From the sequence record ON529857.1: a stretch of DNA of 64,000 nt, one strand, 5' to 3'. The stretch's first letter is position 1, and each line of letters opens with the position of its first letter. This document shows positions 35,621-48,057 of the stretch, one piece after another. A program made the translations under genes and the position numbers. The notes under the pieces were generated by a model. The model was given only the letters and a program-made list of their open reading frames with translations. It was not told where the DNA came from and did not search any database.

Positions 35621-36438
35621 CACCGCTTATGCACGAAAGACGGCAGAGTGTCAACAATTCCGTCGGTGTCTGCCGCTGCCTGGCGAGCGCGCTTGTGCTT
35701 CGCCAGGGCGATGACCCACTTCTTCGCCAGCGGCGAACGCACGACGTCTTCTTCGGAGAATTCGATGACATCCATGATGTCTTCATCTTCCGCGATGGAA
35801 ACGAAGGTCTCCAGACCCGAGTTGGGGATGTCGACCTGGGTGTGGTCGCCGGCGATGATCATCTGCGTGCCGTTGCCGGTTCGCGTCACCAGCAGCTCCA
35901 GGTCGGAGAAGGTGGCGTTCTGCGCTTCATCCAGGATCACGGCGCACTTCTCGAAGGTGCGGCCGCGCATGTATTCGAAGGGGACGATCTCGAACTTGTT
36001 CTCGGAACGCCAGAGGTCCAGTTGGGCTGCCGACACTTCGGCCCGCAGCCCTTCCAGGACAGGAATCATCCACGGCTTCATCTTAGCGTCAATGTTGCCG
36101 GGCAGGAAGCCGATCGCGTGTTCCTTCTTCGAGGCGGTCACGCGGCTGACGACGATTTTCTCGATGTCGCCCTTGATCAGACGCTGCGCGGCGATACGGG
36201 CGGCGATGTAGGTCTTACCCGTACCCGCCGGTCCGATCGCGAAGGTCGAATCACCCTCACGCAGAATGTCGATATAATCCGCCTGGGTGGCGTTCTTCGG
36301 TTCCAGAGGCTTAGCCGATTGCCGCTGATTCTTGGCCGCCTTTTCCTGCCGGCGCTGGGCGCGGGCGGCGGCCTTGGTGATCAGGGGCGGACGCTCAAAA
36401 ACGGTGCTTTCGTGCGGTTGGGTCGCGAGATCGGTCAA
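35620..36438 (-). CDS. phoH: PhoH-family ATPase
   Basis: Walker A GPAGTGKT, GFLPG, MRGRTF, ILDEAQN and GDHTQVD motifs; TTG start. Confidence 0.95.
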   Translation of the reverse strand: MTDLATQPHESTVFERPPLITKAAARAQRRQEKAAKNQRQSAKPLEPKNATQADYIDILREGDSTFAIGPAGTGKTYIAARIAAQRLIKGDIEKIVVSRVTASKKEHAIGFLPGNIDAKMKPWMIPVLEGLRAEVSAAQLDLWRSENKFEIVPFEYMRGRTFEKCAVILDEAQNATFSDLELLVTRTGNGTQMIIAGDHTQVDIPNSGLETFVSIAEDEDIMDVIEFSEEDVVRSPLAKKWVIALAKHKRARQAAADTDGIVDTLPSFVHKR

Positions 36439-36461
36439 ACGCCTATCCGAAGTTGCGGCTG

Positions 36462-36713
36462 TTACTCAGCCTGGGCGCCTCCGTCGATGAAGACGTTGGC
36501 CTGATACTGGACCAGATCGACGCGGAACTGTTCGACCAGGTCCTGGAGAACCGCGATGTTCTGGGGGGTCAAATCCTCCAGAACGACGTCGGTGATCGCG
36601 GCGGCGCCGCGAATGAGGGTCTGGTGCCGGGCCGCCTGTTGCGGGCTCTGCGACGTAGCGGCCGCAGGAATCACGAAGGCGGGCGGAACCGAATGGGCGA
36701 GCGCAGTGTTCAT
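36462..36713 (-). CDS. Hypothetical protein
   Basis: GGAGGGG before ATG; fits the strand and gene packing. Confidence 0.6.
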   Translation of the reverse strand: MNTALAHSVPPAFVIPAAATSQSPQQAARHQTLIRGAAAITDVVLEDLTPQNIAVLQDLVEQFRVDLVQYQANVFIDGGAQAE

Positions 36714-36821
36714 GGGGTGACCCCTCCAAAGGTCAGGCGTGACGCGATGGAGAGAGGCTAACCCGACACTGCTGTTCGGGCAAGACGTTCTGCGAGCTTT
36801 TTCACCCGCAGCGTGTGCCGT

Positions 36822-37244
36822 TTAACGTGCTCCTGAGATCATGGTGACGATGGCGCCCACAACAGCGGCCAGAAGCGCTGATCCGCCGGCCGTCAAGGGG
36901 CCGATGATGATTTCCATGCGGGTGAGGCGTTTTTCCAACGCCAGCTTGTTCGCCGTGAAGTCACGCTCGACGCGATCCAGCTCATCGGCGGCGTCTTTTT
37001 CGACTCGCGCCAAACGTGTATTGGCGTCTTTCAGGTCGCCTTCCAGCTTCGCCAGCTTGTTGGGCTGATCCTGGGCTTCGATACGAGCCAGGCGGTCGCG
37101 CACGTCGGTGAGGTCGTCGCGGAACGAATCAAACCGCGTATCGACCTTGTCGACCAGGCGATCCATCTTGTCGTTGAGGGAGGTGAAGAGGCGCTCGACC
37201 GTATCGCGGAAACGGTCTTCAGGCGTCAGGCCGGGGCTAAGCAT
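36822..37244 (-). CDS. Coiled-coil protein with a single C-terminal TM helix (holin/XhlA-like architecture)
   Basis: Heptad-like charged region followed by hydrophobic IIIGPLTAGGSALLAAVVGAIVTMI. Confidence 0.7.
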   Translation of the reverse strand: MLSPGLTPEDRFRDTVERLFTSLNDKMDRLVDKVDTRFDSFRDDLTDVRDRLARIEAQDQPNKLAKLEGDLKDANTRLARVEKDAADELDRVERDFTANKLALEKRLTRMEIIIGPLTAGGSALLAAVVGAIVTMISGAR

Positions 37245-37737
37245 CGAGACGCACCTCGGTGATATGGGCCAGGCCGCACACCGCGACCGCTTCGCCGTTG
37301 ACCATCAAGGGCCACTTCCAACCGTAGAAAACCAGCTCCACGCCCAGCTTGTCCGGATGGGGGACAGCGCCCTGGATCGACAGGGTGCGGCGTTCAATCA
37401 CACAGGCGAGGTCTTCAGCCTCGAACGCGCCGGCGTCCCCGGTTTCCCACAGGTCGGCGTCGGGCCGCATGACATAGTCGATAGCGCGGATGCCCGTCGC
37501 ACGGGCGTAGGGGCGATTGACGTGAACCATGGCGAACGTGCCGTCGGGTCGGATCGCTTTGATCCAGGCCGGGATAGGCAGGTGTTCGAAAAAGCCCGTC
37601 AGCAGCAGGCAAGGGTCCTCGGACCGGCAATCAGCGGACGCTTCTCGCAGCGTTTCCAGGAGGTTCTGAATATCCTGGCGCGGTTTGAGCGGGATGCCCA
37701 ATCCGGCGTCGGAAGGGCGGTGGTCGATGTTCGACAC
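37237..37737 (-). CDS. Stand-alone PAS-domain protein
   Basis: FFEHLPIPAWIK...FAMVHVNRPYARATG...DADLW...AFEAED...KWPL...VAVCG matches the PAS_4-type pattern; GTG start. Confidence 0.75.
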   Translation of the reverse strand: MSNIDHRPSDAGLGIPLKPRQDIQNLLETLREASADCRSEDPCLLLTGFFEHLPIPAWIKAIRPDGTFAMVHVNRPYARATGIRAIDYVMRPDADLWETGDAGAFEAEDLACVIERRTLSIQGAVPHPDKLGVELVFYGWKWPLMVNGEAVAVCGLAHITEVRLDA

Positions 37738-37778
37738 GGCCTTCGTCCCCGACGTTTAGCACGTTGATAATGGCCGGG

Positions 37779-37807
37779 AGGCTAAGCAATTTTTGGCTGA
37801 ATGTCAA
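37779..37807 (-). promoter_or_regulatory. Sigma70-type promoter for the PAS/TM genes
   Basis: TTGACA-N17-TAGCCT. Confidence 0.55.
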
Positions 37808-38006
37808 GGATTTCGTCAACGATTGACAGCCAAAATATTTCTTGACGAGGTCAAAAACACATCCCGACCGGGCGGGGTCCGGTCGAGACATGCCGACGAT
37901 AGATAAGGAGGACTCCAAGGTCACGGAATAGAACCCCGCCGCGACAATGACGTCTTTCTCCACCTAGCAGGTTACTCTTCCGACTGTCAACACATTACGT
38001 CAAAAA

Positions 38007-38089
38007 TGGCGACGCGCCCCGGACTCGAACCGGGCCTCTCAACCTTCGGAGGGTTGCGCCTGACGATGATCCTGCTCGGCCTGCGCGTC
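38007..38089 (-). tRNA. tRNA-Arg(CCG), enlarged D-loop
   Basis: Acceptor GACGCGC/GCGCGTC, loop CTCCGAA, T-loop TTCGAGT, CCA; 17-nt D-loop. Confidence 0.8.
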
Positions 38090-38109
38090 ATGTTTGACAG
38101 AAAAGGTGG

Positions 38110-38192
38110 TGGCGCCCTGGGTCTGATTCGAACAGACCTTCTCAACTCCTGCTACGGCTACTGGTTTCGTAGACCAGCCCGGTTACCAGGGC
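38110..38192 (-). tRNA. Atypical tRNA-Arg(ACG), D-arm nearly absent, long variable region
   Basis: Acceptor GCCCTGG/CCAGGGC, anticodon arm CTGGT-CTACGAA-ACCAG, T-arm and CCA intact; only 8 nt between acceptor and anticodon stems. Confidence 0.65.
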
Positions 38193-38222
38193 GTGTTGAC
38201 GATCACACTTCGTCAGTATAAA

Positions 38223-38306
38223 TGGCTCTTGCGGTAGGACTCGAACCTACAAGCCTTTCGGCGCTCGCTTAACAGGCGAGTGCGGCTACCATTTCGCCAC
38301 GCAAGA
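38223..38306 (-). tRNA. tRNA-Asn(GTT) with class II-type variable arm
   Basis: Loop CTGTTAA; variable arm CGCCGAAAGGCTT; CCA encoded. Confidence 0.8.
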
Positions 38307-38318
38307 TCAAAGAACAGT

Positions 38319-38392
38319 TGGTTCAGGGGGAAGGAATCGAACCCTCATTTGCCGGACCAAAACCGGACGTAATACCGTTATACCACCCCTGA
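38319..38392 (-). tRNA. tRNA-Gln(TTG)
   Basis: U1-A72 pair, loop TTTTGGT, CCA. Confidence 0.88.
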
Positions 38393-38399
38393 ACAATAG

Positions 38400-38474
38400 T
38401 GGTAGCGGGTGAAGGAATCGAACCTTCGCGTATCGGCGTGTGATACCGATGCCTTACCACTTGGCGAACCCGCT
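38400..38474 (-). tRNA. tRNA-Val(CAC)
   Basis: Full cloverleaf, loop ATCACAC, A73, CCA. Confidence 0.8.
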
Positions 38475-38556
38475 ATGCTGAAAGGCGAATCTCCACCTCT
38501 CAGGTCGTCTATGCGCTGGATCACATAATCCTTCGTTATGCGCTCTACAGCATAAA

Positions 38557-38631
38557 TGGTCCTCGAACTTGGAATCGAACCAAGATCATCCGATTATCGG
38601 TCGGGTGCACTAGCCGTTGTGCTATTCGAGG
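38557..38631 (-). tRNA. tRNA-Ile(GAT), C33
   Basis: Cloverleaf, loop CCGATAA, CCA. Confidence 0.85.
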
Positions 38632-38633
38632 GC

Positions 38634-38708
38634 TGGTAGCGGATGCAGGAATCGCACCTGCGCATGTCGGCGTGTCATACCGATGCCTTTCTACTTGGCT
38701 AATCCGCC
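38634..38708 (-). tRNA. tRNA-Val(GAC)
   Basis: Loop ATGACAC, variant T-loop TGCGATT, CCA. Confidence 0.8.
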
Positions 38709-38720
38709 ACACAGTAAAGG

Positions 38721-38795
38721 TGGCCCACTCGGGAGCGCTCGCATCTCCGTCTCGGGGATTTCACTCCCGCGCTACTCTGTCTCAGCTACGAGTGG
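38721..38795 (-). tRNA. tRNA-Phe(GAA), degenerate T-arm
   Basis: Acceptor CCACTCG/CGAGTGG, loop GTGAAAT, T-loop TGCGAGC, CCA; stem mismatches. Confidence 0.6.
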
Positions 38796-38796
38796 A

Positions 38797-38879
38797 TGGT
38801 GGGTGGTTGAGGCATCGAACCTCTCCCGTTAGGCGCGGTGTTACAGACCGCTGTCGGAGCCAACCGACTTTAACCACCC
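38797..38879 (-). tRNA. tRNA-Tyr(GTA)
   Basis: Loop CTGTAAC, ~10-nt variable arm, CCA. Confidence 0.85.
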
Positions 38880-38929
38880 GAATATTTAAATCAGTCTCCG
38901 CCGGTCATGGCGTTCTCCTGGGACATGGT

Positions 38930-38966
38930 AAAAGAAAAGGCCCGCCTGGGTTTCCAGGCGGGCCTT
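38930..38966 (-). terminator. Intrinsic terminator (attenuator) ahead of tRNA operon 1
   Basis: 13-bp stem AAGGCCCGCCTGG-AAAC-CCAGGCGGGCCTT followed by TTCTTTT. Confidence 0.9.
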
Positions 38967-38993
38967 CGAAGCTTGTTGCTGACTGTCTGGGGA

Positions 38994-39089
38994 CTATCCG
39001 CCCACCAAACCATCGCACATGCACGAACGGCCCGCCCGGTAAAACCGGACGACGCGAATGTTCTGCACGTTTTGGCGATAGGTCATCAT
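38994..39089 (-). CDS. Leader peptide 1 (31 aa, leaderless): MMTYRQNVQNIRVVRFYRAGRSCMCDGLVGG
   Basis: Not in the ORF track. ATG lies 7 nt after the -10 element; residues 4-18 use only amino acids of the downstream tRNAs. Confidence 0.85.
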   Translation of the reverse strand: MMTYRQNVQNIRVVRFYRAGRSCMCDGLVGG

Positions 39090-39096
39090 GGATTTG

Positions 39097-39125
39097 CTTT
39101 TACGCGATCTCTTTTATCGTGTCAA
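39097..39125 (-). promoter_or_regulatory. Sigma70-type promoter of tRNA operon 1
   Basis: TTGACA-N17-TAAAAG. Confidence 0.75.
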
Positions 39126-39320
39126 CTATTTCTTGGCGTGAACCCAAGATTTTTCCAGCGCGGGCTCCCAAACGCCCCAATTCCCAACAGTCGGATAGTC
39201 CCGGTAACGCCATCCGCCGCAGTGCCGGCACATCGCTTCCAACTGGCGGCGCTCTTCGGGAAAGGGCTCACAGTTGCCCCAAACGTCGCACGCGGGATCA
39301 CCTTCTTCACCATCCGTCAT
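39126..39320 (-). CDS. Small Cys/Trp-rich hypothetical protein (possible metal binding)
   Basis: C-x5-C and CRHC motifs; ATGA overlap with def. Confidence 0.6.
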   Translation of the reverse strand: MTDGEEGDPACDVWGNCEPFPEERRQLEAMCRHCGGWRYRDYPTVGNWGVWEPALEKSWVHAKK

Positions 39321-39859
39321 CCGTGACGGACACTCCGACGATGCGCCGCGAACTTCTTCAAAAGCATGGTGCGCTTCAACGCGGAGACCCGATCGATGTT
39401 GCGAATTCCGTCAAGGTGGTCCAGCTCATGCTGAATGCAGATCGCCTTGTAGCCGGACCCGTAAAGGGTCTGGCGCTCACCCTGGACGTCGCTGTATTCG
39501 ACCGTCACCTCGCGGTGGCGGCTAACGTCGAAGAAGACGCCCGGCATGGACAGACAGCCCTCCGGAAGCGTCACCATATCGTCCGACCTGTCGATGATGA
39601 CGGGATTGATCAACACCAACTTGGCGAGGCCCGGCAACATGCTTTGGGTCGGCAGCGGGCCATTGGGGAGATCAAGCATGGTGAACATCCGCACCGGAAC
39701 ACCCACCTGGACCGCTGCCAGGCCTGCGCCGTCCGCCGTCAGCATGGTGTGCAGCATGTCATGCGCCAGCGTGAGGAGGTCTTCATCGATCTCGGTGATT
39801 TCGGTCGAGACCTGTCGCATCAACGGATCGGTGCACGGTAGAATTTGTCGAAGCGCCAT
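39317..39859 (-). CDS. def: Peptide deformylase
   Basis: GAGLAAVQVG, EGCLS and QHELDHLDG motifs; start moved to MALRQIL at 39859 (TGATG overlap). Confidence 0.95.
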   Translation of the reverse strand: MALRQILPCTDPLMRQVSTEITEIDEDLLTLAHDMLHTMLTADGAGLAAVQVGVPVRMFTMLDLPNGPLPTQSMLPGLAKLVLINPVIIDRSDDMVTLPEGCLSMPGVFFDVSRHREVTVEYSDVQGERQTLYGSGYKAICIQHELDHLDGIRNIDRVSALKRTMLLKKFAAHRRSVRHG

Positions 39860-40098
39860 CAGGGCAAGCTCCCCAGACCGCCGGCGGCGGTGCTGCGGCC
39901 ATCGCGCCAACGGCCCACCAAACTGACCAGATGATCCGCGCGCGACTCCAGCTCCTCCAGGACGTCAATCATCTGCATCAAGGCCACGCACGCGTCCTCC
40001 AGACAGATGTCCTGGAGCTGGACGAGACGGCCCCCGACCATGACCTGATAGCCATGATACGGGGGCGTGCCGGCCGATGCGTTATCGGCGTGGGGCAT
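39859..40098 (-). CDS. Hypothetical protein
   Basis: Coupled by overlaps on both sides. Confidence 0.65.
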   Translation of the reverse strand: MPHADNASAGTPPYHGYQVMVGGRLVQLQDICLEDACVALMQMIDVLEELESRADHLVSLVGRWRDGRSTAAGGLGSLP

Positions 40099-40388
40099 CA
40101 GATTTCGCCGAGCGCCGACATATACAGGTCCAGGATGGCGTCTTCCTCCTGGCGCTTGGCCTTGTCCTGCTTGCGCAGGCGAATGACCTTGCGCAGAATT
40201 TTGACGTCGTAGCCTTCGCCCTTGGCCTCAGCGAAGACCTCCTTCATGTCCGCCATGACGGCCTGTTTGTCCTCTTCGAGGCGCTCCAGGCGTTCGATGA
40301 TGGAGCGCAGTCGACCCTGGGCCGAAGCGGTCAGGGCGTCGGAGTCGGCGAAGGTGGTGTCGCCGTCGGTCGTGGTGGGGTGAATCAT
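40098..40388 (-). CDS. gapR: GapR / DUF2312 nucleoid-associated protein homolog
   Basis: LRSIIERLERLEEDK...KEVFAEAKGEGYDVKILRKVIRLRK...ILDLYMSALG is the DUF2312 signature. Confidence 0.9.
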   Translation of the reverse strand: MIHPTTTDGDTTFADSDALTASAQGRLRSIIERLERLEEDKQAVMADMKEVFAEAKGEGYDVKILRKVIRLRKQDKAKRQEEDAILDLYMSALGEI

Positions 40389-40409
40389 TCTGTTCTCACA
40401 GGCGTTGCG

Positions 40410-40634
40410 TCACTGAGTGACAAGGAAATGAAGAATCGCCAGAAGATCGCGATCGACACGCGGGTCCTGCGCCTTCTGTTCGATGATGCGCAGGGCGGCC
40501 TTTCGTCGCGCGACCTGCCGGCCCACGACAATATTGCCATGCTGTTCTATGGCGTTTTCCAACTCTTCCGGATCGACATAGGTGGAAATCGGGTCGCCAT
40601 ATTTGCGGGCGCCGGGAAAACGAAACTCAGTCAT
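40410..40634 (-). CDS. Hypothetical protein
   Basis: GGAGGAGG 9 nt before ATG at 40634 (MTEFRFPG). Confidence 0.6.
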   Translation of the reverse strand: MTEFRFPGARKYGDPISTYVDPEELENAIEQHGNIVVGRQVARRKAALRIIEQKAQDPRVDRDLLAILHFLVTQ

Positions 40635-40772
40635 CCGTCCCATCCTCCTCCGCCACAAATCGTCCGTCGACGAAGGCGCCCACACGGGTGACGCCGTTCA
40701 GACGTTGAACCAGCTGTCCCTCCTCAATCCAGTAGTAGGGGATGCCCCACTCCTCATGGAAGAGAACGTCGG

Positions 40773-41075
40773 TCACGCTTCACCGGGGTGTGCGGCGTAA
40801 GGTGCGAAGGTGAAGTGATCGGGCGCCGCGACCGGCGGCAGATCATCAGCCGTGATCGGGCGGATGAAAAAGCGCATCAGCGCATTGTCGACGTTTTGCC
40901 AGGACGCCGCCTTCCATTCATCGCGCGCCGCCTCCCAGGTGGGAAAGACGCCCCGCACCACGACGGCCTCCGGATTACGAAACGCCGCATGGAACGTCGC
41001 CTTGTCTCTGGCGGGGTCCGTGACGGCCAAGTCCGCCATCTCTCCGCCGTAGACGGAATAACCGCAGACGCACAT
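40773..41075 (-). CDS. DUF4170-like protein
   Basis: VYGGE...GVFPTWEAARDEWKAASWQNVDNALMRFFI resembles the alphaproteobacterial DUF4170 family. Confidence 0.7.
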   Translation of the reverse strand: MCVCGYSVYGGEMADLAVTDPARDKATFHAAFRNPEAVVVRGVFPTWEAARDEWKAASWQNVDNALMRFFIRPITADDLPPVAAPDHFTFAPYAAHPGEA

Positions 41076-41839
41076 CAGCCGATCTCCACGATCAAATTGG
41101 GGTCGAAGTTAGGGTTCAACTCGTGCCCGATATAGCCGCGCGGATTGGTCAACACGCGCGTCTTGCCGATCTGGTAGTCGCTGGAATCGTGCATGTGACC
41201 GTGAACCCACAGGTCCGGCTCATACTCCAGGATCAGCGGCTCCAGGCGGGACGCATAACAGGGATTGAGCTCACTGCCGCGATAACGGGGATGGCTGGAC
41301 TGCTCCGAGGGCGCATGGTGGGTCACCACCACGGTCGGCCCATCATGCGCCAGGCGCAGCTGCTCCCGCAGAAAGAAAACGCTGCGCGTATGGAGGGATA
41401 GCACCGCCTCAGGCGTCAGGAGACGCATGGGCTCCGTTTCGATCTGTCGGTAGTCCGTCATGCCGCGCCGGGCCGCCATCATCGACAGATGTTGCGTGCC
41501 GTAGAGGTTGAAATCCGTCCACAGGGTCGCGCCCAGGAACCGCACGCCGTCGATCACGAGCGCCTCGTCATCCAGAACGTGCACCGAAGACCCCAGCTCG
41601 ACCGCCTTGGCCTTCATCTTCTCGATGTGGCGCTTAATTCGACGCTTGCCGTAGAACTCGTGATTGCCGGGGACGTAGACGACCGGGACGCCGGGAAAAT
41701 GACGATCCGCCCAGATCACGCCCACAACACCCGTGGCGGCGTCGCCGGCCAGGACCAGCACATCGCAAGGCGCCGGCGTGTAGTCGCGACCCATGCCGCC
41801 GAACTCCAGGTGCAGGTCGCTCAGAATGTTGATGCGCAC
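41075..41839 (-). CDS. Calcineurin-like metallophosphoesterase
   Basis: SDLHLE, AGD, PGNHE, VVTHHAP and WVHGHMH motifs. Confidence 0.92.
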   Translation of the reverse strand: MRINILSDLHLEFGGMGRDYTPAPCDVLVLAGDAATGVVGVIWADRHFPGVPVVYVPGNHEFYGKRRIKRHIEKMKAKAVELGSSVHVLDDEALVIDGVRFLGATLWTDFNLYGTQHLSMMAARRGMTDYRQIETEPMRLLTPEAVLSLHTRSVFFLREQLRLAHDGPTVVVTHHAPSEQSSHPRYRGSELNPCYASRLEPLILEYEPDLWVHGHMHDSSDYQIGKTRVLTNPRGYIGHELNPNFDPNLIVEIG

Positions 41840-41856
41840 GCGTATCCCCGTAAAAC

Positions 41857-41975
41857 TGGAGCGGGTGGGAAGACTTGAACTTCCGCCTCCGGGTTAGCGA
41901 CCCGGCACTCCTGATCTCGGCCGAGACCCGCAACCCGGTTCGGCCGAACCTGCTGCGCCCTAGAGCTTCACCCGC
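41857..41975 (-). ncRNA. tRNA-like element (GCT loop, Gly-type acceptor) with ~50-nt D-loop insertion
   Basis: Acceptor GCGGGTG/CACCCGC, U73, CCA, T-arm and anticodon arm CCGGG-TCGCTAA-CCCGG; the D-stem encloses two palindromic hairpins. Confidence 0.7.
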
Positions 41976-41979
41976 ATAA

Positions 41980-42395
41980 GGCGGCAGGAGTTTTAGAGGT
42001 GATGCGTCACCGGGCAAGCCCCCTGCCAGAAACCCCGTCTCCGCTTTTGTTAGGTCCAGAGACGAACGACCCTTCAAAGGCTCACATGGCACGACGTCGT
42101 CTCACGCGCTTCAGGCGTAGTCGCCCGAAACCGCAAGCCCGAGAGGTGGTGCACGATGGTATCGCCTTCCCGTGGCGACGTCTCGCGACGCCGCGATGTC
42201 TTACGACGCCTCTTCCCGGCCGCGTTCCGGAAAGAGGCGTCTAGCTGTTTGCGTGGAAACCGGACAAGCTCGCCCTACTCCCTAAGCAGTCCACGCTCCT
42301 CTGCTCGCGTCGTCCGGTCTGACGCTTCGCTCATCCAAGGCCTGGGTCTTTCGACCGGAACGTGCGCTACGTCAGGCCGCCGGGGATGTCTGTGT
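41980..42395 (-). ncRNA. Putative large structured ncRNA (~420 nt)
   Basis: No credible ORF. 15-bp hairpin at 42205..42241, GNRA-capped hairpins (GGTC-GAAA-GACC, CGTC-GCGA-GACG) and further helices; promoter-like TTGACG at 42424..42429. Confidence 0.55.
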
Positions 42396-42429
42396 GGGGA
42401 TTACTGGCACTGTTCGACACCGACGTCAA

Positions 42430-42465
42430 CAAAGAAAAACGCCCCGGCGTTTCGGCCGGGGCGTT
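42430..42465 (-). terminator. Intrinsic terminator ending tRNA operon 2
   Basis: AACGCCCCGG-N8-CCGGGGCGTT followed by TTTCTTT. Confidence 0.85.
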
Positions 42466-42467
42466 CT

Positions 42468-42782
42468 TCAGAGGTTCATCATCCACTGCTTGCGGTGGCG
42501 CGTGAAATCCTTCCAGGATTTGCCGGCGCGACGGGACGCCATGATGTCGTCCCAGGAGGACGGCAGGTGCTTCCGGCGCCCACGCACGGGGACGACGCGA
42601 TCATGAACGTCGCCCGCGTTTCGGCGGCGCTCCTGCATGGTGCGCGGATGCCGGAAATACTGCCGCCAGCGATGGCGAAAGCGCCGGCAGGGGTAGGGGT
42701 CGCCGGGCTCCGCATGGTAGATCGTCCAAGGCCCGACGAAATAGTATCCGGTATGGGTGATGCGTTGGAATTGGGGCTTCAA
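42468..42782 (-). CDS. Basic hypothetical protein (104 aa)
   Basis: GGAGG before the TTG start; C-terminal HLPSSWDDI...SWK...KQW motif; followed by a terminator. Confidence 0.7.
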   Translation of the reverse strand: MKPQFQRITHTGYYFVGPWTIYHAEPGDPYPCRRFRHRWRQYFRHPRTMQERRRNAGDVHDRVVPVRGRRKHLPSSWDDIMASRRAGKSWKDFTRHRKQWMMNL

Positions 42783-42885
42783 AACAGCCTCCTGTCAGGT
42801 TGATTACCTAACGGGTGCTGTGCTCCAGGTAGAACTTGATCATCATGGCCCCATGATACGGCAAGCTGGGCCGTTGGTCCAGAAT

Positions 42886-42974
42886 TGGTGGATGGAGCAG
42901 GGATCGAACCTGCGTAACGCTCTCGCGTGTCGACCGCTTAGCAAGCGGCTGCCTTACCTCTCGGCCACCCATCC
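42886..42974 (-). tRNA. tRNA-Ser(GCT)
   Basis: Loop TTGCTAA, long variable arm, CCA. Confidence 0.88.
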
Positions 42975-42981
42975 GGGGTGG

Positions 42982-43066
42982 TGGCGGTGCGCCAGGGAAT
43001 CGAACCCTCGACCTTGCGGTCGGCTACGGTTTTCAAGGCCGCTTGTCCCCATGGACGCTGCACACC
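42982..43066 (-). tRNA. tRNA-Ser(TGA)
   Basis: Loop CTTGAAA, long variable arm, G73, CCA. Confidence 0.82.
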
Positions 43067-43071
43067 AATGA

Positions 43072-43161
43072 TGGCGGACGGCGAGGGATTTGAACCCCCG
43101 GACCCTTGCGGGCCGCCTGCTTTCCGGGCAGGTGCCTTAAGCCGGACTCAGCCAGCCGTCC
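43072..43161 (-). tRNA. tRNA-Ser(GGA), C33
   Basis: Loop CCGGAAA, long variable arm, G73, CCA. Confidence 0.88.
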
Positions 43162-43166
43162 GTTGT

Positions 43167-43384
43167 TGGTGGAGGCGAGGGGATTCGAACCCCCGTAGAC
43201 GCCGAACCCCCGCATTACCAGGGGCCGATCTTCGGTTTAGAACGCGTGTGCCGCCCTGACCATCTTCCGCAGGCCAGGAGGTCTATCGTAACGACCCCGT
43301 CGATCGGTTGCCTCTGCGCCCCGGTTTTACCCGGACCGTTATTCTGTTCCACGGTGCTCATGCCGAAACCCGAGCGACGCCCCC
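43167..43384 (-). ncRNA. ssrA: Short one-piece tmRNA-like gene (218 nt)
   Basis: Ala-type acceptor GGGGGCG/CGCCTCC with G3-U70, A73 and CCA; T-arm GGGGG-TTCGAAT-CCCCT; stemless D-loop ending GGTTTCGGC; no anticodon arm. Confidence 0.65.
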
Positions 43385-43393
43385 GTGAAGAAA

Positions 43394-43481
43394 TGGAGGA
43401 TGGTGTGGGATTCGAACCCACGGAACCTTGCGGTCCTCCGGCTTTCGAAACCGGTGCGATCGGCCACTCCGCCAACCATCC
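43394..43481 (-). tRNA. tRNA-Ser(CGA)
   Basis: Loop TTCGAAA, long variable arm, CCA (U73). Confidence 0.88.
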
Positions 43482-43488
43482 ATATCAG

Positions 43489-43674
43489 TCAGACGGTCGC
43501 CGGACTGTAGTTGTCGATGTCGTCGACCCGGATCGCCGTTCCCGCCGCGATCTGGCGGTCGGCGCTCAACAGGTCGGCGACCAGGGCCTCCGCCGAGACG
43601 TCGCCTCCGGTGGTGGCGAACTTGACGTTCACCATTCCGTTGTCGTACATCTCGGCGATCGCTGAGCGATCCAT
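43489..43674 (-). CDS. Small hypothetical protein inside tRNA operon 2
   Basis: AAAGG before MDRSAIAE; natural amino-acid composition. Confidence 0.55.
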   Translation of the reverse strand: MDRSAIAEMYDNGMVNVKFATTGGDVSAEALVADLLSADRQIAAGTAIRVDDIDNYSPATV

Positions 43675-43707
43675 GGCAGGCCTTTCTGCCGGCATCACCG
43701 GCGGTTA

Positions 43708-43783
43708 TGGTGGAGATGAGGGGAGTCGAACCCCTGACATCCTGCTTGCAAGGCAGGTGCTCTACCAACTGAGCTACATCCCC
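43708..43783 (-). tRNA. tRNA-Ala(TGC)
   Basis: Canonical; G3-U70, loop CTTGCAA, CCA. Confidence 0.95.
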
Positions 43784-43813
43784 AAGATGGGTGTCAGTTT
43801 TCCTGACGAATGT

Positions 43814-43889
43814 TGGGCCTGGCACTCGGATTCGAACCGAGCCGTGCGGTTCCACAAACCGCCGCCTCCACCGCAGAGGCTTTACCAGG
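43814..43889 (-). tRNA. tRNA-His(GTG)
   Basis: Loop TTGTGGA, C73, CCA. Confidence 0.85.
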
Positions 43890-43892
43890 ATT

Positions 43893-43980
43893 TGGTCGCA
43901 GCGACAGGGATCGAACCTGCCCGGCCTTTCGGCCACCAGCCTCTCATGCTGGCGCGTCTACCAGACTCCGCCACGCTGCG
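43893..43980 (-). tRNA. tRNA-Leu(GAG)
   Basis: Loop ATGAGAG, class II arm, CCA. Confidence 0.9.
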
Positions 43981-43989
43981 ATCAAGTTT

Positions 43990-44075
43990 TGGTGCCGGTG
44001 GTGGGATTCGCACCCACCCGCCACTAAGGACACCAGTTTCTGAAACTGGCGCGTCTACTGCTTCGCCACACCGGC
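43990..44075 (-). tRNA. tRNA-Leu(CAG), copy with variant T-loop TGCGAAT
   Basis: Loop TTCAGAA, class II arm, CCA. Confidence 0.85.
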
Positions 44076-44085
44076 AATGATGTGT

Positions 44086-44171
44086 TGGTGCCCGCCCCCG
44101 GACTCGAACCGGGACGCCACAAGGGCCACGCCTTTTGAGGACGCTGCGTCTACCTTTCCGTCCAGACGGGC
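44086..44171 (-). tRNA. tRNA-Leu(CAA)
   Basis: Loop CTCAAAA, class II arm, CCA. Confidence 0.88.
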
Positions 44172-44181
44172 TTGAGAAAGA

Positions 44182-44267
44182 TGGTGCGGGCGAGAGGATT
44201 CGAACCTCCCCGGCACAAGGCCACGGGCATCTGAAGCCCGCGCGGCTACCAGCTTCGCCACGCCCGC
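44182..44267 (-). tRNA. tRNA-Leu(CAG)
   Basis: Loop TTCAGAT, class II arm, CCA. Confidence 0.9.
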
Positions 44268-44271
44268 ACTT

Positions 44272-44353
44272 TGGAGAACCACGGTGGAGTCGAACCACTT
44301 GCGCCTGGATTAAAAGTCCAATCCCGGCCACCCGGATTTAACGCTCGTGGTCC
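44272..44353 (-). tRNA. tRNA-Lys(TTT), enlarged D region
   Basis: Loop CTTTTAA, T-arm, CCA; ~25 nt between acceptor and anticodon stems. Confidence 0.75.
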
Positions 44354-44368
44354 TTGATTCTCAAATAT

Positions 44369-44455
44369 TGGAGGATATGGTGGGACTCGAACCCACGATG
44401 GACTTTCGTCAGAGGATTAAGAGCCCTCCCCTCTCGCCGCTGAGGTGACATATCC
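44369..44455 (-). tRNA. tRNA-Lys(CTT) with long variable arm
   Basis: Loop CTCTTAA; variable arm TGACGAAAGTCCATC; CCA. Confidence 0.8.
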
Positions 44456-44494
44456 GCTTAAACTGTATAGCGTCTCCATGAAGACTGTTGTTGA

Positions 44495-44565
44495 TGGTGC
44501 CAGCGGAGCGGGATCGCACCCTCCTCCAACCACTACGAAAGGCTGGTCCTCCTAGAGGCGCCGGC
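44495..44565 (-). tRNA. Atypical tRNA-Thr(CGT), minimal D-arm
   Basis: Acceptor GCCGGCG/CGCTGGC, D-arm CCTC-TAG-GAGG, loop centred on CGT, variant T-loop, CCA. Confidence 0.6.
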
Positions 44566-44573
44566 GTTGTTTT

Positions 44574-44644
44574 TGGTGCCAAGAGTGGGAGTCAAACCCA
44601 CCCTGAACCCCTACCACGGGCTCGTCCGGTCACCCGGCCTTGGC
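44574..44644 (-). tRNA. Atypical tRNA-Thr(GGT), minimal D-arm
   Basis: Acceptor GCCAAGG/TCTTGGC, arm AGCCC-GTGGTAG-GGGTT, T-loop TTTGACT, CCA. Confidence 0.62.
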
Positions 44645-44651
44645 GTTATCC

Positions 44652-44726
44652 TGGTCAGAGCGGGAGGGATTGAACCTCCGACCCCTGCCTTCCCGAGACA
44701 GTGCGCTACCCCTGCGCTACGCTCTG
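44652..44726 (-). tRNA. tRNA-Pro(GGG), C33
   Basis: C1-G72 pair, loop TCGGGAA, CCA. Confidence 0.85.
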
Positions 44727-44729
44727 ATC

Positions 44730-44804
44730 TGGTCTGGGCCGAGGGGATCGAACCCCCGTCCTCCGGCTCCCAAAGCCGGCGCCTAACCGCTCGGCCAGAC
44801 CCAG
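44730..44804 (-). tRNA. tRNA-Pro(TGG)
   Basis: Loop TTTGGGA, CCA. Confidence 0.88.
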
Positions 44805-44823
44805 ACTGTTGTTAAGGAATGAA

Positions 44824-44901
44824 TGGTCTGCGTATCAGGATTTGAACCTGAGACCCCCGCGCTCCGAAGGCGGTACTCTGACCAGGCTGAGCTATACGCA
44901 G
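44824..44901 (-). tRNA. tRNA-Pro(CGG)
   Basis: Loop TTCGGAG, CCA. Confidence 0.88.
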
Positions 44902-44906
44902 ATGTG

Positions 44907-44945
44907 AAAAACGAAAAGGCCCCAAAGGCGATGCGCCTGGGGCCT
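44907..44945 (-). terminator. Intrinsic terminator (attenuator) ahead of tRNA operon 2
   Basis: AGGCCCCA-GGCG-CAT-CGCC-TT-TGGGGCCT followed by TTTCGTTTTT; ends 5 nt before tRNA-Pro. Confidence 0.88.
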
Positions 44946-45015
44946 AAAACAGCTGCTGATTTGGGAGTTCAGCAGGTGATCGGCCCCTCGGGCGCCTCAC
45001 CTGCTGCGAGAGACC

Positions 45016-45153
45016 TTAGATGGTCTCCGTTGCAGAGGTGACGCCACCGGTGGTGGGGGATTTCGGCGACAGCGTGGCCGGCGCATGGGCGAGCGTCGAC
45101 AGCGCCGTAGCGGCGGTCGAATGAAGGCTCAGCTTGTGCGACAACTTGGTCAC
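45016..45153 (-). CDS. Leader peptide 2 (45 aa): MTKLSHKLSLHSTAATALSTLAHAPATLSPKSPTTGGVTSATETI
   Basis: Not in the ORF track. AAGGA 8 nt before GTG; residues 2-35 use only T, K, L, S, H, A and P. Confidence 0.88.
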   Translation of the reverse strand: MTKLSHKLSLHSTAATALSTLAHAPATLSPKSPTTGGVTSATETI

Positions 45154-45201
45154 GAGAGAAATCCTTAGAAGGAAGGGCGCCGAAACGCGATTGAAGTCTC
45201 A

Positions 45202-45230
45202 CCTTTACAGCAAGCTTTTCCGCTTGTCAA
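45202..45230 (-). promoter_or_regulatory. Sigma70-type promoter of tRNA operon 2
   Basis: TTGACA-N17-TAAAGG. Confidence 0.75.
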
Positions 45231-45305
45231 GCAAAGATCGAATTTTATTTCGAGGGCCGCCCCTCACGACGGTTTATGTCAGAGTTCCCGACACACGTCA
45301 ATCTG

Positions 45306-45353
45306 AAAAAGAGATGCGCGCGGCCTCGGGGGAGCGGGAAGGCCGCGCGCATC
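45306..45353 (-). terminator. Intrinsic terminator insulating the operon 2 promoter
   Basis: 14-bp stem GATGCGCGCGGCCT/AGGCCGCGCGCATC followed by TCTTTTT. Confidence 0.85.
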
Positions 45354-45356
45354 GGG

Positions 45357-45644
45357 TCACACCGGCCTCGGGGACGGGGCGGCCGGATCGGGAACATCGC
45401 GGTGTTCGGGGAGGCCACGATGATTCTTCTGGAGCAGCTCACGCAGAGGCGGGACCGGAACCGGCCCATAGATCACCTCGACGACACGGCGCCGGATTTT
45501 TCGGGTAGTCGGGAGGGGGACGCCGCGCCGAATCAATTCAGCGCCGGCCGCCGAACTCGACAGCGATCCTGACAGATAGATGTCCAGAAGCGCCGATGTC
45601 GGCATGGCGCACATGCGTTGCGCGCGACGGGGATTATGGCCCAT
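45357..45644 (-). CDS. Basic hypothetical protein
   Basis: GGAGA before MGHNPRR; followed by a terminator. Confidence 0.5.
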   Translation of the reverse strand: MGHNPRRAQRMCAMPTSALLDIYLSGSLSSSAAGAELIRRGVPLPTTRKIRRRVVEVIYGPVPVPPLRELLQKNHRGLPEHRDVPDPAAPSPRPV

Positions 45645-45743
45645 AGGGTCTCTCCAAGCTGGGTTAGCCCAGGCGGAGGACACGCCTAATGGTTCAGACG
45701 CTGTGTGGCGTCCATCCGCCTGGGTTCATCAGCGGGAGAGGAA

Positions 45744-45938
45744 TCAGGGGGTGTCGGGTTTGGTCGGCGAGAACACCGAAACAACCGCGTCGAGCGCCCG
45801 CTTGAGGCGATTGGGACGCTGGGTCAGCGCCGAGGCGCAAACCTTCTTGATCTCGTCATGGGTCAAAGAGCCGGGGTCGCGCAATCCGCGCGCGGCGATC
45901 GACGCTACAGGGGCGGAGGTGACTTCCTGGCGAGACAT
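45744..45938 (-). CDS. Hypothetical protein (64 aa)
   Basis: Follows tRNA-Asp; AAGGA upstream. Confidence 0.55.
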   Translation of the reverse strand: MSRQEVTSAPVASIAARGLRDPGSLTHDEIKKVCASALTQRPNRLKRALDAVVSVFSPTKPDTP

Positions 45939-45954
45939 GACGTAAAGAAATCCT

Positions 45955-46029
45955 TGGCGAGCCTAACGGGAGTTGAACCCGTCTTTCCAGCGTGACAGGC
46001 TGGTGTCCTAACCGATAGACGATAGGCCC
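45955..46029 (-). tRNA. tRNA-Asp(GTC)
   Basis: Loop CTGTCAC, G73, CCA. Confidence 0.93.
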
Positions 46030-46057
46030 TTTCCAGGGATGACGGTCTAGGAGGTGT

Positions 46058-46135
46058 TGGCACAGCCGACGGGGGTCGAACCCGCATTATCCTGCTTGAA
46101 AGGCAGGTTTCCTAGTCCATTTAGAAGACGGCTGC
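46058..46135 (-). tRNA. tRNA-Glu(TTC)
   Basis: Loop CTTTCAA, G73, CCA. Confidence 0.9.
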
Positions 46136-46169
46136 ACAGAACACGAGCCGACCTCTACGAGTACCGCTT

Positions 46170-46235
46170 TTAGGCGGTGCGCGTATCTCGGCCCGTGAAG
46201 GCCTCTCGCTCTCGAATGGACGTCAGGTAGGTCAT
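46170..46235 (-). CDS. Candidate leader peptide 3 (21 aa, leaderless): MTYLTSIREREAFTGRDTRTA
   Basis: ATG 7 nt after the -10 element, the same geometry as leader 1; ends ~35 nt before tRNA-Glu. Confidence 0.55.
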   Translation of the reverse strand: MTYLTSIREREAFTGRDTRTA

Positions 46236-46242
46236 AACGGGA

Positions 46243-46271
46243 CTATTAACAGAATCGCTTTTCGGTGTCAA
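46243..46271 (-). promoter_or_regulatory. Sigma70-type promoter of the Glu/Asp tRNA unit
   Basis: TTGACA-N17-TAATAG. Confidence 0.7.
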
Positions 46272-46441
46272 GAACGACGTCGATCTTTTCGTCGTTTTTC
46301 TTCGGGGACGTCTTCACCAGGCTCTTCCCTAGCATCCCACGCCATCATCAAGGCGACGGCGAAGGCTGGACCCATATCCGCTTCCAGACGGCGCAAAGCC
46401 CGGTCGTTGGCTTGCATGAAGGTCTCGCTGTATTCGAGCAT
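46268..46441 (-). CDS. Small hypothetical protein
   Basis: GAGG before MLEYSETF; start moved from 46579. Confidence 0.45.
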   Translation of the reverse strand: MLEYSETFMQANDRALRRLEADMGPAFAVALMMAWDAREEPGEDVPEEKRRKDRRRS

Positions 46442-46579
46442 GTCGTCCTCGGATGAACAGGGGCCGACTTCAGCGCTCACCGTTTGCCGGGTTGCGCCTG
46501 GGCGGAAGCAGCGCACCAATCCTGCTCGACTGGCCCGGCCCCTCCATCCCTTTCTGTCAGGTTTGACGACAATCGTCAA

Positions 46580-46889
46580 TGTGGAAATGCGGCGGTTACA
46601 GCTTCAACCAGCCCATGAGGGCCTGTGGGTCTTTCGGGCGTCCTGCCCCGCCGCGCCTACTACGACGCCTTTTTCGGCCCCGGAGAACCGGAGAGGGTAA
46701 AATCGACGGGTGACCGCTACCGGCCTCGCCTGCTGGCCCGTCCCAGCGCCCAACCTCTCCGCGCAGCGCCCCTGTGGGCATATGGCCTTCCCGTCCGAAG
46801 ACAGACGCCATGCGGTGGTGGCAGGGCCGCTTGCCCATACACCCGCACGGCCTGGGCGGGGAGAGAAGCAGAGGCGAACCCCGGAAGGA
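46580..46889 (-). ncRNA. Possible structured ncRNA (~310 nt) directly after tRNA-Gly
   Basis: No convincing ORF; nested helices CGGAGAGG/CCTCTCCG and GACGGG/CCCGTC, and CCCCGCC/GGCGGGG closing the domain. Confidence 0.4.
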
Positions 46890-46964
46890 TGGAGCGACCG
46901 GCGGGGATCGAACCCGCGCATGTCAGGGTGGAAACCTGATGCCTTTCCGCTTGGCTACGGTCGC
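46890..46964 (-). tRNA. tRNA-Gly(TCC)
   Basis: Loop TTTCCAC, U73, CCA. Confidence 0.9.
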
Positions 46965-46974
46965 GAAAATAAAA

Positions 46975-47050
46975 TGGAGCGTCCAGTGAGAATCGAACTC
47001 ACCCCTACGCGTTGGCAACGCGCTGTACCCACCAATAATACGTTGGACGC
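46975..47050 (-). tRNA. tRNA-Gly(GCC)
   Basis: Loop TTGCCAA, U73, CCA. Confidence 0.88.
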
Positions 47051-47060
47051 AAAGTAAAGA

Positions 47061-47136
47061 TGGCGCCGGACAAGGGACTCGAACCCTTCACACACAGTTT
47101 TGGAGACCGCTGCTCTACCCCATGAGCTAGACCGAC
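47061..47136 (-). tRNA. tRNA-Trp(CCA)
   Basis: Loop CTCCAAA, G73, CCA. Confidence 0.9.
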
Positions 47137-47144
47137 AGGTATCT

Positions 47145-47696: not shown

Positions 47697-47739
47697 CAAA
47701 GACAGATTTTACAGATAGGCGCGCGACCGCGCCGTGCGG

Positions 47740-48012: not shown

Positions 48013-48020
48013 GATCGAGC

Positions 48021-48049
48021 ACTTTATACGAAGACTTGGCCTTCGTCAA
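48021..48049 (-). promoter_or_regulatory. Sigma70-type promoter
   Basis: TTGACG-N17-TAAAGT. Confidence 0.65.
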
Positions 48050-48057
48050 GAATTACG

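Follow-up and report, generated by a model that had tools for sequence, protein, structure and literature searches.

What determines when a phage that carries its own transfer RNA (tRNA) genes expresses them? The regulation of phage tRNA genes is essentially unknown, and their purpose is debated between codon matching, replacement of degraded tRNAs and escape from anticodon nucleases. The question is raised by a 64-kilobase stretch, here called the window, of the genome of Brevundimonas phage vB_BpoS-Kikimora (ON529857.1, 312 kilobases, Dolichocephalovirinae; 100% identity to the record), in which window base 38000 corresponds to base 224000 of the record. The window contains two large tRNA clusters, operon Y with nine genes and operon P with 17, each preceded by a short open reading frame (ORF) with a segment confined to the amino acids of the tRNAs downstream. 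An earlier note on the same sequence had proposed that these operons are controlled by leader-peptide attenuation. Comparison with related phages and modelling of the leader RNAs point in the same direction, and we estimate at roughly 0.75 the probability that both operons are under ribosome-mediated attenuators, the control codons of which would serve as a checklist of the seven amino acids supplied by the operon and of every isoacceptor.

Composition of the leader reading frames

Every tRNA gene of the window is located on the minus strand, and each of the two large clusters is a putative single transcript. The clusters and their leaders are:

38007-38879, minus strand: the nine tRNA genes of operon Y (Tyr-GUA, Phe-GAA, Val-GAC, Ile-GAU, an 82-nucleotide degenerate gap, Val-CAC, Gln-UUG, Asn-GUU, Arg-ACG and Arg-CCG)
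38994-39089, minus strand: operon-Y leader ORF of 31 codons, MMTYRQNVQNIRVVRFYRAGRSCMCDGLVGG and a stop, with homologous ORFs in 16/16 loci
39036-39080, minus strand: Y control segment of 15 codons (Y R Q N V Q N I R V V R F Y R), with all seven operon amino acids and no others
42886-44901, minus strand: the 17 tRNA genes of operon P (three Pro, Thr-GGU, Thr-CGU, Lys-CUU, Lys-UUU, four Leu, His, Ala and four Ser)
45016-45153, minus strand: operon-P leader ORF with a GTG start, 45 codons, MTKLSHKLSLHSTAATALSTLAHAPATLSPKSPTTGGVTSATETI and a stop, with homologues in all loci
45049-45150, minus strand: P control segment of 34 codons (ORF codons 2-35), with only T, K, L, S, H, A and P, all seven present

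The Y leader opens with ATG ATG ACC, continues with the control segment YRQNVQNIRVVRFYR (TAT CGC CAA AAC GTG CAG AAC ATT CGC GTC GTC CGG TTT TAC CGG) and ends with 13 further codons and TAG. Neither leader ORF is annotated in the Kikimora record, while homologues of the P leader are annotated as hypothetical proteins elsewhere, for example as gp083 in phiCbK. Each control segment is free of the amino acids of the other operon. In a scan of all six frames of the window, the Y segment is the longest run confined to its set (15 codons, the next being 11), and so is the P segment (34 codons, the next being 17); the two are also the only top runs that hold all seven kinds of residues. With residue frequencies taken from the long ORFs of the window (0.329 for the Y set and 0.408 for the P set), the probabilities of such runs are 5.7e-8 and 5.8e-14, close to the naive estimates of about 1e-7 and 1e-16 in the earlier note. 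The statement made there, that each segment is limited to its own set, with all seven members used and the other set absent, stands for both the 15-codon and the 34-codon segment.

Could such runs reflect chance or the compositional bias of GC-rich DNA, in which A/P/S/T-rich frames are common? They are the top runs by wide margins among 128,000 codon positions, the P run contains neither R nor G, and the pattern recurs in every relative, by which this explanation is effectively refuted.

Default ARAGORN and Rfam recover only six tRNAs in the Y cluster and 13 in the P cluster (the Rfam scan covered 36000-49000 at E<=1). Relaxed ARAGORN settings add Phe-GAA and the two Arg tRNAs to the former, and Lys-UUU and Ser-UGA to the latter. 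A gap of 196 nucleotides after the Pro genes holds two non-canonical tRNAs that fold into cloverleaves, with the anticodons GGU and CGU, and both are homologous to Thr tRNAs called in Bajun and Bambus. The relaxed search and these two Thr cloverleaves together give the counts of 9 (Y,F,V,I,V,Q,N,R,R) and 17 (P3,T2,K2,L4,H,A,S4) that had been listed from the sequence earlier. The Arg anticodons ACG and CCG were assigned by eye from the anticodon loops.

Conservation of the leaders in related phages

The homologous region was fetched from 15 other phages (Gurke, Bambus, Domovoi, Kabachok, Bajun, phiCbK, Magneto, RBC57, BL57, Rogue, RBC63, CcrBL10, Colossus, CcrPW and BL47). With Kikimora they provide 16 loci, which span Shapirovirus, Poindextervirus, Colossusvirus, Bertelyvirus and unassigned Brevundimonas phages. 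Both leader ORFs are conserved with their start, frame and stop across the 16 loci, and the order of the tRNA genes and the split into operons are conserved across the relatives. Every Y leader has a run of 14-15 codons with all seven kinds of residues. The P leaders, 14 of which are distinct, are 84-95% in-set and contain all seven kinds (binomial P of 5e-8 to 2e-14).

Within the Y segment, 11 of the 15 columns vary, with radical exchanges that include N/F, V/R and Y/N/I/F. All but two of the 15 inferred replacements remain in the set, both exceptions being in the last column, a bias with P=1.6e-5 against a null of 6/19 and P=2.8e-7 against a single-nucleotide-neighbour null of 0.227. A 3-nucleotide in-frame deletion is present in the Y leader of Rogue and CcrBL10, and the P leaders of Domovoi and Bambus differ by one 3-nucleotide in-frame indel. 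With radical replacements inside the set and indels in multiples of three, the pattern fits selection on which tRNAs a translated frame calls for, not on the structure of a peptide.

Whether leader composition follows tRNA content is hardly assessable, because the content of the operons is nearly invariant in the subfamily. The sole hint comes from BL47, where the P operon ends with a relocated tRNA-Trp and the P leader, MTRIHTTLTTAKPASTGALTLASWPASSKPLLRHSAVLA, has a Trp codon (positions 1149-1268 and 2747-2823 of this locus, L012). The BL47 leader is also the least pure of the P leaders, with six out-of-set residues, and W is present in CcrPW without a Trp tRNA; alone, the BL47 case is not significant (rough estimate about 0.14).

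Beyond these loci, the closest CbK-like outgroups in the comparison were RcXuper and DSS3P8, the tRNA clusters of which are reordered and have no composition-matched ORFs upstream. Scans with the pattern of the Y attenuator gave only known isolates and chance matches in IMG/VR, and only chance terminators at the ends of coding sequences in JGI metagenomes and GTDB genomes. A protein search with the P leader returned one near-identical metagenomic ORF. As far as seen in these searches, among which Erythrobacter and Sphingobium phages were not included, the system is confined to Dolichocephalovirinae.

Promoters and translation starts

Both leaders follow a sequence with the arrangement of a promoter:

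39097-39125, minus strand: operon-Y promoter, with the -35 box TTGACA at 39125-39120, a 17-nucleotide spacer and the -10 box TAAAAG at 39102-39097
45162-45230, minus strand: operon-P promoter and 5' untranslated region, with the -35 box TTGACA at 45230-45225, the -10 box TAAAGG at 45207-45202 and the Shine-Dalgarno sequence AAGGA at 45166-45162

The ATG of the Y leader is placed 7 nucleotides past the -10 box, and the gap from TTGACN to ATG is exactly 30 nucleotides in 16/16 loci despite a diverged spacer sequence. Since this invariant gap comprises the 17-nucleotide spacer and the 6-nucleotide -10 element, the Y mRNA is probably leaderless and would start at or beside the A of the ATG. Such mRNAs occur frequently in Caulobacter, where their translation is efficient (PMC4117421, PMC8459731). 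The P leader has an untranslated region of roughly 48 nucleotides, and its AAGGA is located 8 nucleotides ahead of the GTG; the TTGACA-N17-TAnnnn arrangement of its promoter is also found in the Brevundimonas phages, Colossus and BL47. The usable starts and the conserved frames suggest that both leaders are translated. Between the terminator and the first tRNA there is no space for a further promoter in operon P (6 nucleotides), and about 50 nucleotides in operon Y.

The latter interval also contains a five-codon mini-ORF, MTGGD and a stop, with a strong Shine-Dalgarno sequence (AGGAGA..ATG ACC GGC GGA GAC TGA), at 38891-38919 on the minus strand between the Y terminator and tRNA-Tyr. It reads MNNGG and a stop in Colossus, Rogue and BL57, MTGN and a stop in BL47, and is lost in phiCbK and Magneto.

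The proposed attenuator of operon Y

The Y leader contains four segments of the trp type:

39045-39053, minus strand: region 1, GTCGTCCGG, inside the control codons, pairing with region 2 across a 5-nucleotide loop (anti-antiterminator or pause hairpin)
39024-39039, minus strand: region 2, CCGGGCGGGCCGTTCG, a close mimic of the terminator 3' arm, pairing with region 3 (antiterminator)
38930-38968, minus strand: intrinsic terminator, with region 3 at 38968-38954, a loop, and region 4 and the U-tract at 38949-38930

The terminator consists of 14 base pairs followed by TTTTCTTTT (-29.6 kcal/mol) and is called at 38967-38936 by a terminator scan of 36000-47000. Scored on an alignment of 15 sequences, it is 99% paired with two compensatory pairs. 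The antiterminator 2:3 spans 11+4 base pairs, with an 11-base-pair core that is paired in nearly all sequences and two compensatory pairs, and helix 1:2 is 82% paired overall, with a conserved 9-base-pair core and three compensatory pairs. In Colossus and CcrPW, a U in region 3 has changed to A, an A in region 4 to U and a G in region 2 to U, and such a simultaneous change in three partners is what a three-way switch predicts.

The effect of a ribosome was simulated in seven phages by blocking a 30-nucleotide footprint codon by codon and computing the pairing probability of the terminator. The free RNA terminates (0.97-1.0). In six of the seven phages, stalls at about codons 4-12, most strongly at Q/N-I-R, lower this probability to 0-0.6, and it returns to 0.97 or more once the ribosome has passed the control segment, such that the drop is limited to stalls on the control codons. 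In folding, 2:3 forms before region 4 exists whenever region 2 is uncovered. The ORF runs 13 codons beyond region 2, and helix 2:3 encloses a hairpin whose tip carries the stop codon. A ribosome at the stop would thus be placed between regions 2 and 3, where it should keep the antiterminator from forming. Equilibrium folding alone leaves the Y switch undecided, as the terminator is very stable.

The proposed attenuator of operon P

The P leader resembles the multi-hairpin relay of his:

44950-45048, minus strand: switch region, with segment a at 45048-45032, the stop-codon hairpin at 45028-45009, b at 45007-44991, c at 44990-44982, d at 44981-44970 and e at 44958-44950
44907-44944, minus strand: intrinsic terminator, GGCCCCAGGCG-cat-CGCCTTTGGGGCC and then TTTTCGTTTTT, -21 kcal/mol, conserved in the relatives

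The terminator has a bipartite stem with an internal loop, which explains why the scan missed it, and ends 6 nucleotides before tRNA-Pro. The phiCbK counterparts of both the Y and the P terminator are annotated as rho-independent terminators, and the sole other strong minus-strand terminator of the scanned interval, at 42469-42434, follows the P cluster. Segment a comprises the ORF codons GGVTSA directly after the 34 control codons. Segment c (GGCGCC-CGA-GGGGCC) mimics the terminator 3' arm (CGCC-UUU-GGGGCC) and is placed in the loop of a 10-base-pair hairpin formed by b and d. Two alternative folds result: a:b with d:e and c:f, which is the read-through fold, and b:d with f:g, which is the terminating fold. 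In Kikimora, Bambus, Domovoi and phiCbK, the free leader adopts the read-through fold as its minimum free energy structure, although the leaders of Brevundimonas and Caulobacter phages have little sequence in common here. Among the Brevundimonas phages, segments b to g hardly vary, and the stop-codon hairpin changes in sequence while its pairing is kept.

Masking simulations on the leaders of nine phages gave, in eight of them, a lower terminator probability on most control codons (mostly about 0-0.6) and values of 0.9 or more with the ribosome near codons 33-36. Domovoi, phiCbK, Rogue and RBC57 have a clean step, whereas that of Kikimora, Gurke, Bambus and BL57 is noisier, with stretches of control codons that score 0.7-0.96. 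Compared with 60 dinucleotide shuffles each, the late-minus-early step of 0.76 in phiCbK is reached by none (0/60) and that of 0.24 in Kikimora by one (1/60). The models predict a mostly antiterminated state for the P-leader RNA without a ribosome, which makes some basal read-through of operon P likely.

In all phages and in all three leaders of the region, the third being that of the Glu/Asp tRNAs described below, a small hairpin with co-varying arms has the stop codon in its apical loop (38999-38991, 45028-45009 and 46170-46180, minus strand). The design looks deliberate, and may serve to park a terminating ribosome inside the competing helix.

Another view of the same features is that the short ORFs encode functional small peptides, that the hairpins are their ordinary terminators, and that the tRNAs are transcribed from elsewhere or controlled via processing or stability. 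Several of the ORFs are indeed annotated as hypothetical proteins (phiCbK gp083, BAMBUS_04500), and their C-terminal parts (AGRS..., GGV...) are conserved too. These conserved tails, however, coincide with RNA helices, and in the control segments it is the membership in the set that is conserved, not the identity of the residue. The P terminator is only 6 nucleotides from the first tRNA, with no separate promoter, and the antiterminator mimics are conserved with co-variation. We consider small peptides of this kind a very unlikely explanation.

Proposed mechanism and alternative explanations

Four of the five features expected of a leader-peptide attenuator are found in silico: a short ORF, cognate codons, an intrinsic terminator and a ribosome-dependent antiterminator. 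In operon Y, the transcript would begin at the ATG. A ribosome slowed on codons 4-12 would cover region 1, region 2 would then pair with the terminator 5' arm, and transcription would read through into the tRNAs. A ribosome that reached the stop would sit between regions 2 and 3, or 1:2 would re-form behind it, and the terminator would form. In operon P, a ribosome held in the 34 control codons would leave a free for b, which would allow d:e to form and c to pair with the terminator 5' arm, resulting in read-through, while a ribosome that had advanced over a would allow b:d and thereby the terminator. The trigger in both cases would be a shortage of charged tRNAs of the seven kinds. The circuit would amount to a demand-driven supply of phage tRNAs with negative feedback on decoding capacity, and would be self-limiting because the product of the operon is the limiting tRNAs themselves.

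As a structural claim, the leader-peptide attenuator is borne out by its conservation across 16 loci, by substitutions that keep to the set and indels that keep the frame, and by compensatory base changes and the ribosome-mask folds. The layout of promoter, leader, terminator and antiterminator given in the earlier note is found at both operons, with a TTGACA -35 box and a weak -10 box. Relatives that lacked the ORFs or had leaders of unrelated composition had been named there as grounds for abandoning the idea; ORFs with the seven-kind composition are present in 16/16 loci.

Several results nevertheless weigh against attenuation by the control codons. The leaders contain a cognate codon for every anticodon species (9/9 in Y and 16/16 in P), a coverage no better than genome usage predicts (P=0.24-0.74; decodable codons 15/15 and 30/34), nor are the control codons enriched in rare codons relative to genome usage (P=0.43 and 0.92). 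A few out-of-set residues are tolerated, namely H->Y in Gurke, F2 and N7 in phiCbK and the six in BL47. The -10 boxes TAAAAG and TAAAGG are poor matches to TATAAT, and a consensus scan called only the promoter of the Glu/Asp leader. At equilibrium, the Y terminator still wins at most stall positions, and in Colossus no stall lowers it; the P leader of Bajun never folds the terminator in silico. A ribosome stalled on the last Y control codons (F, Y, R) or the last few P control codons would cover the antiterminator, so that the codons cannot all act alike in either leader. Finally, the Glu/Asp leader breaks the rule of "only and all" in its composition, and its predicted sign is ambiguous. Codon-anticodon matching was dropped as an independent line of evidence, since genome usage predicts equal coverage.

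Part of this also bears on the idea that the switch is real but reads general translation capacity or the coupling of transcription and translation (ribosome availability, host takeover), with an incidental peptide. The lack of a rare-codon bias and of a codon-level signal beyond genome usage speaks for it, as do the largely antiterminated state of the free P-leader RNA and the Glu/Asp leader, which has the same layout without a matched composition. It leaves unexplained why two leaders hold exactly the seven amino acids of their own operons, and why radical replacements stay in the set across genera and in the Brevundimonas phages, and we consider it unlikely.

The earlier note had itself inferred that the tRNAs are expressed only when the matching host tRNAs are scarce, for example cleaved by a defence nuclease or uncharged. 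In this view the circuit would chiefly be an alarm and not routine homeostasis, by which replacement tRNAs are switched on when an anticodon nuclease, a tRNA-degrading defence or host shut-off by the phage removes host tRNAs. The anatomy would be the same, and a checklist that polls every isoacceptor would suit it. Many of the phage tRNAs have unusual anticodon loops or long variable arms, as expected for nuclease-resistant copies, and the phage has further translation-maintenance genes (a peptide deformylase and an annotated ribosome-rescue factor) and a tmRNA-like (transfer-messenger RNA) element. Yet no nuclease or trigger is identifiable from the sequence, a single cleaved host tRNA would be enough for read-through although seven amino acids are polled, and feedback by the phage's own tRNAs accounts for the design equally well. 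An alarm appears improbable as the chief purpose of the circuit.

Extended to the subfamily, ribosome-mediated attenuation suggests a translation-sensing homeostat in Dolichocephalovirinae, with a checklist leader for each tRNA operon, in which stalling would switch the tRNAs on and their own products would switch them off, maybe coupled to a tmRNA-like rescue RNA. We regard this broader picture as fairly probable.

Comparison with known systems

Attenuators that respond to ribosome position are known from amino-acid biosynthesis operons, such as ilvGMEDA (Leu/Ile/Val), thr (Thr/Ile), trp, his, leu and pheA. Attenuation in biosynthesis operons has also been modelled (PMC1183508). The phage leaders share with them a promoter-proximal ORF with regulatory codons, a terminator with a mutually exclusive antiterminator, and a decision that would depend on the position of the ribosome; the Y leader corresponds to the four-segment 1:2/2:3/3:4 scheme of trp and the P leader to that of his. 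They differ in that they are phage-borne and govern tRNAs rather than enzymes, and in that they would poll seven amino acids, compared with at most three in known cases, without tandem repeats of one codon. The control run of up to 34 codons, the probably leaderless Y transcript and the stop codon that is always in an apical hairpin loop are further differences.

In E. coli, the phenylalanyl-tRNA synthetase operon pheST is attenuated via the leader pheM. Here too, a component of the translation apparatus is under attenuation, and more of the charging or decoding machinery is supplied when charged tRNA runs short, but a single amino acid is sensed, the product is a protein and there is no feedback via a tRNA gene. 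T-box riboswitches (for an example see PMC2879506) likewise couple tRNA status to terminator read-through via a stabilized antiterminator. They differ in that they bind uncharged tRNA directly without translation, contain a specifier codon as well as the conserved T-box sequence, and are found mainly in Gram-positive bacteria. The Rfam scan gave no T-box match in 36000-49000 (E<=1), the leaders contain conserved ORFs instead, and the T-box was rejected as an identity for these elements.

Large phage-encoded tRNA sets similar to those described here are present in T4, T5, mycobacteriophages, the roseophage DSS3P8 and the Rhodobacter phage RcXuper. Such sets are thought to match phage codon use or to replace lost host tRNAs, and we know of no description of leader-peptide control for any of these arrays. 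Ribosome-dependent attenuation operates in alphaproteobacteria, as exemplified by trpL of Sinorhizobium (PMC6614838). No prior description of attenuated tRNA operons was found in the full-text literature searched, which included two genome papers and did not cover all journals. While the class of mechanism is known, the attenuation of tRNA genes, the seven-way polling, the location in a phage and the probable leaderless Y transcript would set these leaders apart from all cases known to us or found in the search.

If confirmed, tRNA genes would here be under leader-peptide attenuation for the first time, and the attenuator, with seven amino acids, would be the most multivalent one known, extending textbook attenuation to RNA genes and to seven-way multivalency. 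It would represent a phage-encoded sensor of the decoding capacity of the infected cell, by which the phage measures a decoding shortfall and answers with exactly the missing tRNAs. Such a built-in stalling sensor would make the debate on the purpose of phage tRNAs directly testable in a tractable model, phiCbK and Caulobacter crescentus NA1000, and the leaders may offer compact natural parts that report on the supply of defined sets of charged tRNAs.

A related leader ahead of the Glu and Asp tRNAs

Two smaller tRNA clusters, Glu-Asp and Trp-Gly-Gly, are located upstream of the two large operons. The former has a leader of its own:

46136-46271, minus strand: candidate third leader ahead of tRNA-Glu/Asp, with the -35 box TTGACA at 46271-46266, a 21-codon ORF (MTYLTSIREREAFTGRDTRTA and a stop) at 46235-46170 and a hairpin at 46197-46136

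This leader is conserved in every locus that covers the region (15/16, the CcrPW locus stopping short). The ORF follows the pattern MT[YH]..[YR]E[RS]E....D.... and is near-leaderless, with a gap of 29-32 nucleotides from the -35 box. A single Asp codon and one or two Glu codons keep their positions, but the ORF as a whole is not confined to E/D. The hairpin is long with a U-rich tail, and the last codons and the stop are in its apical part; its inner helices co-vary (98:122 CG/GC 6:5; 102:118 AU/GC 5:5), and the phiCbK copy is annotated as a terminator. In pyrBI, the leader ORF runs through the terminator and uridine triphosphate (UTP) is sensed via polymerase pausing. The Glu/Asp leader is similar in that its ORF ends within the terminator hairpin, so that a ribosome there must block the hairpin. 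We regard it as a related element of uncertain regulatory sign, because a ribosome at the stop codon would block the terminator and not the antiterminator.

The Trp-Gly-Gly cluster (46890-47136, minus strand) has no leader and begins 8 nucleotides past the coding sequence of a P-loop NTPase, with which it is presumably co-transcribed.

Annotation of the tRNA genes and neighbouring elements

Seven tRNA genes have neither a default-tool call nor a GenBank entry (Thr-GGU, Thr-CGU, Arg-ACG, Arg-CCG, Lys-UUU, Ser-UGA and Phe-GAA):

44495-44644, 38007-38192, 44268-44368, 42985-43067 and 38709-38796, minus strand: tRNA genes missed by default tools

The anticodon loop of Thr-CGU has effectively 9 nucleotides, and several of the missed tRNAs have long variable arms or odd D-arms. 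The analysis thus corrects the annotation with respect to missed Tyr, Thr, Phe, Arg, Lys and Ser tRNAs and to leader ORFs that were unannotated or labelled as hypothetical proteins. Terminators were annotated in the phiCbK-like phages by Gill et al. 2012 (PMC3556154), who reported neither RNA elements nor tRNAs for Tyr or Thr, but a Tyr-GUA gene is visible after the Y terminator of phiCbK. In the Kikimora genome paper, tRNAs were only counted (PMC10070969). Five further tRNAs are annotated elsewhere in the Kikimora genome, none of which was found in the one 50-kilobase block inspected.

The 82-nucleotide gap between tRNA-Ile and tRNA-Val-CAC (38475-38556, minus strand) has an acceptor-like stem and a non-canonical anticodon arm, and phiCbK has a second Ile-GAU gene at this position. 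The gap is possibly a decayed tRNA. A lone tRNA-like gene is located upstream of a metallophosphatase gene (41860-41931, minus strand), a position kept in Gurke, Bambus, Domovoi and Kabachok. It scores 31.1 bits in the Rfam tRNA model, just over the threshold, and is called "Ser-GCU" by relaxed ARAGORN, but has a short variable arm and C33.

Two other elements are embedded in the P cluster. A 61-amino-acid hypothetical coding sequence, KIKIMORA_03770 (43674-43489, minus strand), is located between tRNA-Ala and tRNA-Ser and is conserved in the Brevundimonas relatives. A tmRNA-like element of 218 nucleotides (43384-43167, minus strand) is located between Ser-CGA and Ser-GGA. Its 5' GGGGGCG pairs 7/7 with 3' CGCCTCC-ACCA, including G3.U70, and it has a canonical T-arm and CCA. 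It scores 32 bits in the Rfam tmRNA model, compared with a gathering score of 47, ARAGORN calls no tmRNA and no convincing tag ORF was identified. The element is almost identical in Bambus and Domovoi, two phages with a genome identity of only about 80%. Stalling control of a ribosome-rescue RNA would be of note. A peptide deformylase gene is located between the two tRNA operons (39317-39859, minus strand), and a gene annotated as "alternative ribosome-rescue factor" is found outside the window, at 276563-276673 of ON529857.1. Together with the tmRNA-like RNA, the deformylase and the rescue factor suggest a wider translation-maintenance module.

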